This document shows, one piece after another, positions 39,201 through 42,200 of a stretch of 64,000 nt of DNA. Position numbers and translations under genes: made by a program. The stretch lies in the NCBI GenBank assembly GCA_002269645.1, contig NIVC01001486.1, positions 62,001-126,000 on the forward strand, read 5' to 3'. The stretch's first letter is position 1. Every line of letters starts with the position of its first letter. The notes under the pieces were generated by a model. It was not told where the DNA came from. It did no database searches and worked only from the letters and a program-made list of their open reading frames with translations. Source of the stretch: Macrostomum lignano (lineage: Eukaryota).

Positions 39201-42200
39201 CCTTCAAATAAACTTATCGTGATCCTATCATATTAGACTGATCAATATTTGCGCCTTTAAATTCAGTGTCTCTCCTTTCAAATACAAATATTTTGTCGAC
39301 CTGTGCATTGAGCCTGGGGGGTATTTTATATCGCAATAATCAAGAACCTTTAAGTAAGCTGGATGGCTTTGCGCATTAACGCCATTGGTGCCAAGTGGCA
39401 GAGGTTGGACACGGATGCAGTCGAATGCAGTACAAGGTGCGATTGGAGACGACAACATATCCAGGGTGAATTATTTGAGCAGATAGCGATTTTACACATT
39501 ATGTCACTCCTGAGATGTCACTCTCATCACTCACAGGCACTCCAGATGTCACTCTCATCACTCACAGGCACTCCAGATGTCACTCTCATCACTCACAAGC
39601 ACTCCAGATGTCACTCTCATCACTCACAGGCACTCCAGATGTCACTCTCATCACTCACAAGCACTCCAACTGTCACTCTAATCACTCACAGGCACTCCAG
39701 ATGTCACTCCCATCACTCACAAGCACTCCAGATGTCACTCTCATCACTCTAAAGCACTCTAAAAGTCACTGCAATAACCCAAAGTCACTCACCAGAAATC
39801 CGGGCACTCCTCAGCCGCATGGCCAGCATCTCCCTCCCCGTCAGCGGCTCCTCGGTCGCAGGCGGCGCCGTCCCAGTCGACGACGAGCTCCTCGCCCGGC
39901 GACACCCCGCAGCCGACGGCGAACAGGCCGCAGCGGAGGTCGCCGGCGCCGCCAGCTGTCGACCGGCGCTCGAAACGCGCGTTCGCTCGCCGAGGCCGCC
40001 GACAAGCCGCCGGAGGAGCCGCCAGCCGGGCCGCCAGGCCGCCGACGTCCAGCAGGCGGCGCCAGTCGAGCCGCAGCATCAGCGGCCTGACGGAGGCGGC
40101 GGGTGCACCCGAGCGGAGCAGCAGCCGCAGTCGGCGCCGGGCCTCGAGCGGCTCCACCGGGTCGCCCGGCAGGTCGCAGGGCAGCGGCTGGCCGGCCGAG
40201 AGGCGACCGCCGGGGCAGCCGCTTGGCGCCAGGCCGACCGCCCAGGAGGCGCCGCCGCCTGCGTCCAGGCGGGGCCGTTTGAAGACGGCCAGTTCGGAGC
40301 GCTGATTGGCTGGCCTGCGAAATGGGGGGGGCAGTGGGATTGGGGGTGGCAATTGGCATGGAGCTGTGCGAGTTCAGTGCGGCATTTTAGGAGTGACAGA
40401 GTGCCATTTTGAGAGTGACAGTCTCAGAGTGACACTTAAAGAGTGACGGTGTCAGAGTAAAACTTTGAGAGCGGAGTGTCAGAGTGACACATTGAGAGTG
40501 ACAGTCTCAGAGTGACACTTTGAGAGTGGCAGTGTCAGAGTGAGACATTGAGAGTGACAGTGTCAGAGTGAGACTTTGAGAGTGACAGTGTCAGAGTGAG
40601 ACATTGAGAGCGGCAGTGTCAGAGTGAGACATTGAGAGTGACAGTGTCAGAGTGAGACATTGAGAGCGGCAGTGTCAGAGTGAGACATTGAGAGCGGTAG
40701 TGTCAGAGTGACACTTTGAGAGTGACAGTGTCAGAGTGAGACATTGAGAGTGACACTGCCAGAGTGCCATTTTCACACAGCCCCATTGAGCCAGCCGAAC
40801 CTGGAGAGCCGCTGGTTGAGGCAGCCGGGTCCGCAGGCGGCCGGGTGGCACTCGATGCCCGCCAGCCGGTTGGCGCAGCCGTCCAGCTCGCCGCAGTGGC
40901 GACCCCGGCGCTGGCAGTCACATTTGGCCATCAGGCTGGAGGCTGAGGCTTCCGCCTGCTGCAGCTGCGGCTCCTGACTAGCGGGAGCGGCTGGCTGAGG
41001 CTGGTCAAAGTCAGCTGACACCGGCTGCGGCACGGCGGAGAGCTCGCCGAGAAGGCGGCGGGCGTCCTGCCGGTCTCGGTCTCTGTGGGGGTTCGTGAGG
41101 AGCCTGGGTGAGGCTGGGATGAATAGGAGATGAAGCATCTCAGAGAGGCTGGGATGAATAGATGAAGCATCTCAGGGAGGATAGGATGATTAGGAGATGA
41201 AGCATCTCAGGGAGGCTGGGGTGAATAGGAGATGAAGCATCTTAGAGAGGCTGGGATGAATAAGAGATGAAGCATCTGAGTGAGGCTGGGATCCGTAGAT
41301 GAAGCATCTCAGAGAGGCTGAGATGAATAGATGAAGCATCTCAGAGAGGCTGGGATGAATAGGAGATGAAGCATCTCAGAGAGGCTGGGATGAATAGGAG
41401 ATGAAGCATCTCAGAGAGGCTGGGATGAATAGGAGATGAAGCATCTCAGAGAAGCTGGGATGAATGAGATGAAGCATCCAGAAGCTAAAACAACGAGCAG
41501 ATGCACACCTGAGTCTCCAGGCCTCCTGAGCCAAGGCCACCCCCTCGTTGAATTTGTCCATCAGCTCAGCCGTCTCAGTCCCAGCCGATCCGGCAGCGGC
41601 AGCCGCTGACTCGCCCAGATCGCCGTCCTTGAAGGGGAACAGGCGAGCCAGGGACACCCAATAGTACTCGTCAGTGCCGAAGAAGCGCACGGGAAAAGTG
41701 CCCAGCTGCCTGCCGAGTCGCTGGATGTTCTCAGGCGCGTGCTGTGCCAGCAGGATCTCGCAGGGCCACCAGCGGAACGGGCCGACCTTCACCCAGACGA
41801 TGTCGCCGCATCGAGGCTGCCAGCTGAGCCGGCAGGGGGTGCAGGTGAACGGAGCCGCAGCTGGGGCGGCTGATGGAGAGTCGGGCAGGCAGGCGATGTG
41901 GTAGGAGGCTGGGCAGCGCTGACAGCCCGACAGGCCGCCGGAGCGAAGGCAGGCGAAGCACCAGGAGGTGTTCACGTGACGCGTGGCCGTGGCTGAGCAG
42001 CTGGAGCGCCGCTTTGAGGAGTCGGAGAGCAGGTGGTCCGGGCAGATGATGCAGGCTGGGGTCAGGAAGTGGCTGCCGGCTGGGACACAGCGAGGGCTGC
42101 TGTGGTAGGCGGCTGGGCAGCGGACACAGCTGACCTGGTGGGGACACATTAGGTGAGACAGTGGCTAGATCAGGTGAGACAGTGGCTAGATCAGGTGAGA

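Follow-up and report, generated by a model that had tools for sequence, protein, structure and literature searches.

A stretch of 64,000 nucleotides from the flatworm Macrostomum lignano (assembly GCA_002269645.1, contig NIVC01001486.1, positions 62,001 to 126,000 of the forward strand; hereafter the window) holds the whole of BOX15_Mlig028383g1, a gene of six exons on the minus strand, whose product is deposited in GenBank as PAA67377.1 ("hypothetical protein, partial"). The placement of the locus in Macrostomum lignano was also given by a protein search. By descent and architecture, the gene is a member of the NSD family, and its fifth exon stands at the position of the SET domain. An earlier reading of the letters of the window, here called the original prediction, had described an NSD-type gene with intact reader domains and a catalytically dead-looking SET domain, and had proposed a pseudo-methyltransferase.

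Gene model and reader domains

The features of the gene, in the direction of transcription, are the following (coordinates are those of the window).

Exon 1, 45195..45530, minus strand: start codon ATG at 45530; encodes the first PWWP domain (PWWP1)
Exon 2, 42955..43998, minus strand: helical segment after PWWP1, Ser/Asp-rich linker, PHD1 and PHD2; GT-AG borders
Exon 3, 41509..42134, minus strand: variant PHD3, PHD4 and the second PWWP domain (PWWP2)
Exon 4, 40801..41082, minus strand: linker and AWS zinc cluster; ends in phase 2 (AG/GT)
Exon 5, 39793..40314, minus strand: eroded relic of SET and post-SET; 522 nt, 174 codons, 77% GC, phase 2-2
Intron 5, 33266..39792, minus strand: 6.5 kb, with minisatellites at both ends, a Tc1/mariner element and an unannotated open reading frame (ORF) on the plus strand
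Exon 6, 33064..33265, minus strand: C4HC3 PHD finger (PHD5) and stop codon, without C5HCH

All introns have GT-AG borders, and the translation of the six-exon model corresponds to PAA67377.1 residue for residue, C-terminus included. The coordinates first proposed for exon 5, 39793-40314, are exact exon borders: the acceptor AG lies at 40316-40315 (...TTTCGCAG/G, the slash marking the border), with 40314 as the first exon base, and the donor reads ...TTCTG/GTGAGT, with 39793 as the last exon base and GTGAGT running from 39792. The exon is also open and in correct splice phase, as had been claimed, with phase 2 at both ends and with PAA67377.1 reproduced. It forms a GC-rich block between minisatellites on either side, and it can be skipped in frame (3 x 174 nt, phase 2-2), the joining of exon 4 to exon 6 preserving the reading frame.

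The coding sequence in GenBank begins at an AG acceptor (45544-45543), 12 nt upstream of the ATG at 45530. This acceptor is probably a spliced-leader (SL) trans-splice site, going by the sequence around the start; SL trans-splicing is common in M. lignano (PMC5730564). For this assembly, the GenBank annotation rests on RNA-seq data processed through StringTie, TACO and mapped de novo transcripts, the transcripts being cut at trans-splice and poly(A) sites and the ORFs being taken from TransDecoder (PMC5730564). By way of this pipeline, the splicing of exons 4, 5 and 6 is transcript-derived.

The gene is present in three genomic copies, g1 in the window (locus L003), g2 (L004, contig NIVC01000221.1) and g3 (L001, contig NIVC01000782.1); extra copies are expected in M. 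lignano, which is neopolyploid (PMC5730564). The three copies bear on the idea that exon 5 is an artefact of assembly or annotation, a GC-rich block misassembled or misjoined to the gene. The assembly is PacBio-based with homopolymer indels, and the older ML2 models of the locus are frameshifted and fused with a CHD gene, which would favour such an artefact; nevertheless, exon 5 occurs with the same splice sites on three separate contigs, with 0-1 substitutions, and it is also found in ML2-derived proteins, for which reason hardly any weight is left to this explanation.

A canonical NSD paralogue, whose existence the original prediction had anticipated, was found in the same genome as P0003/P0082 (Mlig026212.g1 / Mlig014479.g2), with SET, AWS and C5HCH present. 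It is listed as "Neoblast, stringent" and as trans-spliced in the supplement of PMC5816591.

The two PWWP domains, five PHD fingers and AWS cysteines that had been described in the window gene are all recognisable with Pfam in exons 1-4 and 6. PWWP was matched in exon 1 (E 1.6e-12) and in exon 3 (E 2.3e-19), the latter matching also PHDvar_NSD (4.6e-9) and PHD (3.6e-4), while exon 2 gave weak PHD and PHD_NSD matches. In exon 4 the AWS match (1.7e-5) is above the gathering score and the AWS cysteines are present at 7/7 positions; in exon 6 the PHD match (3.1e-4) is below the gathering score and the C4HC3 pattern of zinc ligands is intact. The C5HCH finger is absent, the protein ending right after the PHD5-like finger.

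Conservation was then assessed against 20 further NSDs (flatworm, vertebrate and insect), at the alignment columns in which all of these agree. The window gene retains 6/6 of these columns in PWWP1, 17/18 in PHD1-2, where the single miss is probably an alignment slip, 20/20 in PHD3-4, 10/11 in PWWP2, 8/8 in AWS and 1/2 in PHD5; the PHD1-4 cluster, which includes the NSD variant PHD, thus keeps 37/38. Outside exon 5 the retention amounts to 62 of 65 columns, against 9 of 23 within it.

In an AlphaFold2 model made from a 21-sequence NSD alignment, PWWP1 reached predicted local-distance (pLDDT) scores of 80-94 and PWWP2 of 75-90, and the top 50 Foldseek matches of the model were all PWWP1 structures of NSD2 or NSD3 (TM ~0.8). 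The identity of PWWP1 to shark NSD3 is 0.39 for the window gene and 0.41 for the canonical paralogue; for PHD5 the corresponding values are 0.21 and 0.52. The aromatic cage of NSD2 PWWP1 is formed by Y233/W236/F266. At the cage positions of the alignment PWWP1 has H/W/F and PWWP2 has F/W/F, in the window gene as in the canonical M. lignano NSD, and reading of methylated H3K36 (H3K36me) by the window gene is predicted from this match with its paralogue.

Exon 5 in the place of the SET domain

Several features of exon 5 are those of a coding sequence; they speak indirectly for constraint on the exon itself, for which the few substitutions between copies give thin direct evidence. The numbers of G or C at the three codon positions are 145, 111 and 145 of 173 (p=3e-6), and GC at third positions (GC3) is 0.84, compared with 0.66-0.87 in the other exons; the introns have 47-51% GC. 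Synonymous codons are chosen as in other coding sequences of M. lignano (GGC 0.75 vs 0.73), and since GGC stands at 0.75 while GGG stands at only 0.08, this choice does not come from base composition alone. Scored for codon usage, the annotated frame ranks first of the six. In addition, exon 5 differs from copy g2 at 1 of 522 nt, whereas the introns on either side differ at 102 of 4349 (2-4%; Fisher p=1.6e-4); this one substitution is synonymous, none is non-synonymous, and no substitution separates exon 5 from copy g3. The open frame itself was rejected as coding evidence, 14% of composition-matched shuffles being open and one frame of the opposite strand being also free of stops.

The SET signatures were compared with those of the canonical M. 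lignano NSD and of five other NSDs. EYVGD has become DLPGD, FYMLTLD has become PLMLRLD, ELTFNY has become ELVVDW, and GWG has become SWA. At the NSD-invariant columns, exon 5 has S and A for two G, R for N, R for H, T for C, G for P, G for N and W for Y. The losses comprise both Gly of the GxG motif, the Asn, His and Cys of NHSC, the PN pair, two post-SET Cys and the catalytic Tyr, which is replaced by Trp; one of three post-SET Cys is left, and of the zinc ligands (post-SET CxCx4C plus the Cys of NHSC) 1/4 is retained. Identity of the SET region to shark NSD3 is 0.23 for the window gene and 0.65 for the canonical paralogue. The protein of exon 5 consists of Ala, Gly, Arg and Pro to 53%, versus 26% in the canonical SET; Tyr and Ile are absent from it, and Lys occurs once.

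Most of the motif losses listed in the original prediction were recovered, namely DLPGD, LM, VDW and the one remaining post-SET Cys of three. Its counterpart for RFMNHSC was misplaced: the stretch aligned there is an insertion, and RFMNHSCSPN aligns with a different stretch of 10 residues. The NH motif is lost under either alignment (N to R, H to R). As aligned, exon 5 is without the residues needed for binding of S-adenosylmethionine (SAM), for the lysine channel and for the post-SET zinc site. The protein would be expected neither to bind SAM nor to methylate, because the GxG, NH, Tyr and post-SET sites that it has lost have established roles in SET enzymes.

No Pfam family was matched by exon 5 even at E<=1, and a sequence search gave no match in the PDB. 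Exon 5 was also run exhaustively with phmmer (HMMER) against 1.84 billion representative proteins, and the only matches were two older M. lignano models of this gene. More directed comparisons did detect a weak relation. The canonical M. lignano NSD aligned with exon 5 by tblastn at 29.6% identity over 71 residues (E 0.075), in the right place and orientation, and an NSD-specific SET profile made from 25 NSD SET regions scored 6.9 bits (E 2.7e-4) over a relic of 27 residues, with GDvRIGLFAL.RDIeaneELTlNY as the aligned consensus block. The best of 1000 shuffles reached 1.8 bits against this profile, for which reason the SET ancestry of exon 5 is above chance. In pairwise and multiple alignments the relic motifs are collinear across the whole SET domain, directly after the AWS exon, and the relic has remained in frame despite a net insertion of ~34 residues.

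In the AlphaFold2 model, exon 5 has pLDDT values of 20-49 with a mean of ~31, and its second half is coil. A control with the same sequences and the canonical paralogue as query gave ~80 for AWS and ~77 for SET. On these models, the SET fold itself has most likely been lost from exon 5. Profile search and structure prediction, both suggested at the outset, gave a weak SET relic (6.9 bits) and an exon 5 that is left unfolded in the model, where the canonical SET is folded. Rather than an otherwise intact SET domain in which single motifs were hit by point mutations, exon 5 holds a SET domain eroded throughout. The proposal of a pseudo-methyltransferase was right in that the catalytic signatures are gone and the readers are kept, but it did not foresee that the erosion would extend to the entire SET domain, nor that C5HCH would be missing as well; "reader-only NSD with a SET-derived linker" is a better name than "pseudo-methyltransferase domain".

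An active, or at least SAM-binding, SET-like domain of high divergence could be proposed for exon 5 on account of the collinear relic blocks (AVFK, MLxLD and RLLD), of the 9/23 invariant columns retained and of a few weak strands that AlphaFold2 placed in the first half of the exon. We consider this very improbable: substitutions have removed the catalytic Tyr, two post-SET Cys and the GxG, NH and PN motifs together with the Cys of NHSC, the exon encodes neither Tyr nor Ile, none of the Pfam, PDB and protein searches gave a SET match, and pLDDT stays at 20-49.

More weight is due to the explanation that exon 5 is dispensable for the functional product, whether because the exon is usually skipped or because exons 5-6 form a tolerated, essentially unconstrained tail behind an N-terminal reader part. 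The frame-preserving junction of exons 4 and 6, the low-complexity composition and pLDDT of ~31 in exon 5, the highly diverged PHD5 and the loss of C5HCH would all suit it, and the gene would then resemble the short isoforms of NSD2 and NSD3, which in mammals are known to be non-catalytic (PMC12870971). On the other hand, exon 5 is contained in the deposited transcript-based model, it has codon periodicity, typical codon usage and a divergence between copies far below that of the introns, the relic is still in frame, and the ligand pattern of PHD5 is intact. This explanation is regarded as unlikely, but as the strongest of those that compete with the favoured one.

Copies, selection and descent of the gene

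The splice sites are identical in all three copies (10/10). Substitutions among the copies number 34 synonymous and 12 non-synonymous in total, and they are unevenly spread: the folded reader domains have 23 synonymous and 2 non-synonymous (exon 1, 7 and 0; PHD1-2, 10 and 0), whereas the Ser/Asp-rich linker of exon 2 has 3 synonymous and 9 non-synonymous. Because of this difference, the reader domains are seen to be under purifying selection, with one linker free of it.

Compared with the canonical paralogue, the window gene is 80% identical in PWWP1 and 66% in PWWP2. Synonymous divergence (dS) from this paralogue is saturated (0.7-2.0), and in PWWP1 the non-synonymous divergence (dN) is 0.13 with dS ~2. 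The PWWP1 of either M. lignano NSD has 53-59% identity with those of other flatworms. The saturated dS, together with PWWP1 being 80% identical between the paralogues versus 53-59% to other flatworms, indicates that the duplication is old but specific to the lineage leading to Macrostomum. A further candidate, P0002, which seemed to be a second paralogue of 47% identity, was dropped: it comes from the ML2 assembly, which is rich in errors, and represents the same locus with frameshifts and a fusion to the CHD gene.

The five introns of the window gene stand at positions of their own, none of which recurs in the canonical NSD of M. lignano (L002, 4 introns), in an ant NSD (12) or in a Schistosoma NSD (15). 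Between L002 and the Schistosoma gene, one intron position is shared exactly. The unshared introns would fit a retro-copy with later intron gain as well as a heavy turnover of introns.

The comparison of copies is also where a decaying duplicate has to be weighed, that is, a whole gene in decay with noise transcripts, in which the SET region was the first to go, through GC-biased gene conversion. The composition of exon 5 (77% GC, rich in GARP and poor in FYMINK residues) would agree with it, as would the many redundant copies of a neopolyploid organism. Copies g1 and g3 are near-identical over exons 3-5, introns included, suggesting conversion; within this region a tract of ~2 kb (39516-41482 in the window, 13824-15792 in L001) with exons 4-5 and their introns is 99.0% identical, compared with 92-96% elsewhere. 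The tract, which covers the part of the gene richest in GC, suggests a recent gene conversion or recombination, and such conversion could also feed a GC-biased drift. Finally, g2 and g3 carry deletions of 1 bp, in exons 1, 3 and 5.

Each of these three deletions lies in a homopolymer run, which in the window corresponds to CCCC at 45361-45358 (exon 1), CCCCC at 41840-41836 (exon 3) and GGG at 40112-40110 (exon 5). They are probably PacBio errors, although real frameshifts are possible, and with all of them in homopolymers they were set aside as evidence of pseudogenisation. Against decay stand also the counts among copies (23/2 in the readers, 3/9 in the linker), the lack of any acceleration of PWWP1 against the outgroups, and the fact that dS to the canonical paralogue is saturated, yet all zinc ligands and splice sites are intact. 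A neutral exon would moreover be expected to drift to the ~50% GC of the introns and to lose its periodicity. A decaying duplicate is thus an improbable account of the locus. In view of the transcript-based annotation, the conserved splice sites, the selection on the reader domains and the saturated dS to a paralogue with a PWWP1 dN of 0.13, the gene is not a pseudogene.

A proposed reader-only NSD and its genomic surroundings

The explanation that we favour, and consider probable, is that exon 5 descends from the SET/post-SET coding region and belongs to a transcribed and spliced NSD paralogue of the Macrostomum lineage that acts as a reader-only chromatin protein. According to it, an NSD gene was duplicated and the SET/post-SET coding region of one copy decayed to a segment rich in Ala, Gly, Arg and Pro, while selection has kept PWWP1, PHD1-4, PWWP2 and AWS, and the zinc-ligand pattern of PHD5 has persisted. 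Exon 5 would then be translated as a mostly disordered linker that keeps PHD5 in frame, and the protein would most likely serve as a reader-only adaptor or compete with the canonical NSD, which is neoblast-enriched. The analysis demonstrates the structure and descent of the gene, the lost catalytic signatures, the selection acting on the readers and the presence of a canonical paralogue, whereas translation, disorder of exon 5, reading of histone marks and the role as adaptor or competitor are what we infer.

Some observations weigh against this explanation. The alignment behind the AlphaFold2 model is shallow (21 sequences), PHD5 is strongly diverged (identity 0.21-0.28, versus 0.34-0.52 for the canonical paralogue) and of low pLDDT, and exon 5 does not evolve significantly slower than the neighbouring exons. 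The ~99% identity of g1 and g3 across exons 3-5 with their introns and the 1-bp deletions that truncate the models of g2 and g3 count on the same side. No expression data for Mlig028383 were found in full texts or in the supplements of three papers, one of these supplements being available in part, and neither word-indexed searches with the whole protein and with exons 4-6 nor the exhaustive search with exon 5 found an orthologue outside M. lignano.

A bolder version can be offered tentatively. The gene would be a dedicated reader-only antagonist or adaptor of the neoblast NSD, and the former SET region would be a selected disordered linker, remodelled under GC-biased pressure and perhaps toggled by exon skipping; the gene itself would perhaps be a retro-copy with five regained minisatellite introns. 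If this were true, a retro-copy with unique minisatellite introns would illustrate how introns are gained in nature when tandem repeats expand.

The order of domains in the window gene, PWWP1, PHD1-4, PWWP2, AWS, the SET position and PHD5, is that of the canonical NSD/Mes-4 H3K36 methyltransferases (human NSD1-3; M. lignano P0003/P0082), and the zinc ligands and PWWP cage positions are common to it and to the canonical M. lignano copy. It differs by the eroded SET/post-SET, the lack of C5HCH, the 77% GC of the exon in the SET position and the lack of any intron position shared with that copy.

In function, the nearest analogues of the window gene are inactive SET proteins and the short NSD isoforms. 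Among the former, plant SUVH2/SUVH9, yeast Set3 and MLL5/SETD5 belong to methyltransferase families, have lost SAM binding or catalysis and serve as chromatin readers or recruiters. These proteins retain a SET fold that Pfam detects, whereas in the window gene the SET sequence escapes detection and no fold is predicted for it. Among NSDs, NSD3-short (NSD3-S) is a BRD4-CHD8 adaptor. Non-catalytic NSD proteins of mammals are known only as splice isoforms, which are hard to part genetically from the enzyme. In mammalian NSD3-S and NSD2-S, one or more reader modules are kept, methyltransferase activity is absent and the proteins act through binding (PMC12870971). Both are isoforms of a catalytic gene and carry PWWP1 only (plus HMG in NSD2-S), while the window harbours a separate gene with both PWWP domains, five PHD fingers, AWS and a decayed SET in frame.

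As a pseudoenzyme the gene would be a clean case, though one with precedents; the principle is not new, inactive SET proteins and short NSD isoforms being already known. In the literature searched, no mention was found of this gene or of any NSD pseudoenzyme of Macrostomum. Its interest would lie in a separately encoded natural NSD without an enzyme domain whose readers are almost complete, C5HCH alone being absent; the host is a transgenic regeneration model amenable to RNAi, and its canonical NSD is stem-cell enriched. Such a gene would serve conveniently as a separation-of-function allele of natural origin in a tractable model of regeneration, and it would permit a clean test of what NSD readers do without methylation, be it competition for H3K36me-marked chromatin or recruitment. 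With 62/65 invariant columns kept outside the SET region and 9/23 inside, the gene is also a clear example of domain-selective erosion coupled to GC-driven drift of amino acids.

The introns have a peculiar make-up. Introns 1-4 (43999-45194, 42135-42954, 41083-41508 and 40315-40800) are ~80-95% minisatellite, each with units of its own (23 bp; 18 and 21 bp; 35 bp; 28 bp), and intron 5 has arrays at its two ends only, with units of 31 and 30 bp. The arrays start 2-76 nt from the donor, and in intron 5 the 31-bp repeat unit includes the donor itself (GTGAGTGA). The introns of the canonical NSD (L002, 10001-20440) are likewise built of minisatellites, with units of 36, 35, 25 and 22 bp.

Two ORFs lie within intron 5. 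An intact Tc1/mariner transposase ORF of 296 amino acids (aa), with DDE_3 and HTH_Tnp_Tc3_2 matches, occupies 37559-38449 on the minus strand; this insertion is absent from copy g3 (L001) and is therefore recent or polymorphic. On the opposite strand, an uninterrupted ORF of 430 aa (35689-36981, plus strand) combines a Cys-rich N-terminus with Thr/Pro mucin-like repeats and ~200 aa of C-terminal sequence. This second ORF gave no Pfam match and is not among the called genes of the locus, and its DNA is ~95% conserved in g3.

The upstream neighbour (48529-64000, minus strand) encodes a remodeller of the CHD3/4/5 (Mi-2) type with two PHD fingers, Chromo, Helicase_C and CHDCT2. This CHD gene adjoins the NSD-like gene at all three loci, and the two are fused in the older ML2 models (P0002 and P0072). 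The ML2 fusions, the adjacency and the trans-splice-like 5' end together raise the possibility that the CHD and NSD-like genes share one polycistronic transcriptional unit. Farther away in the window, a second transposase ORF, mariner-like and of 345 aa, with Transposase_1 and HTH matches, is found at 15792-16829 on the plus strand.

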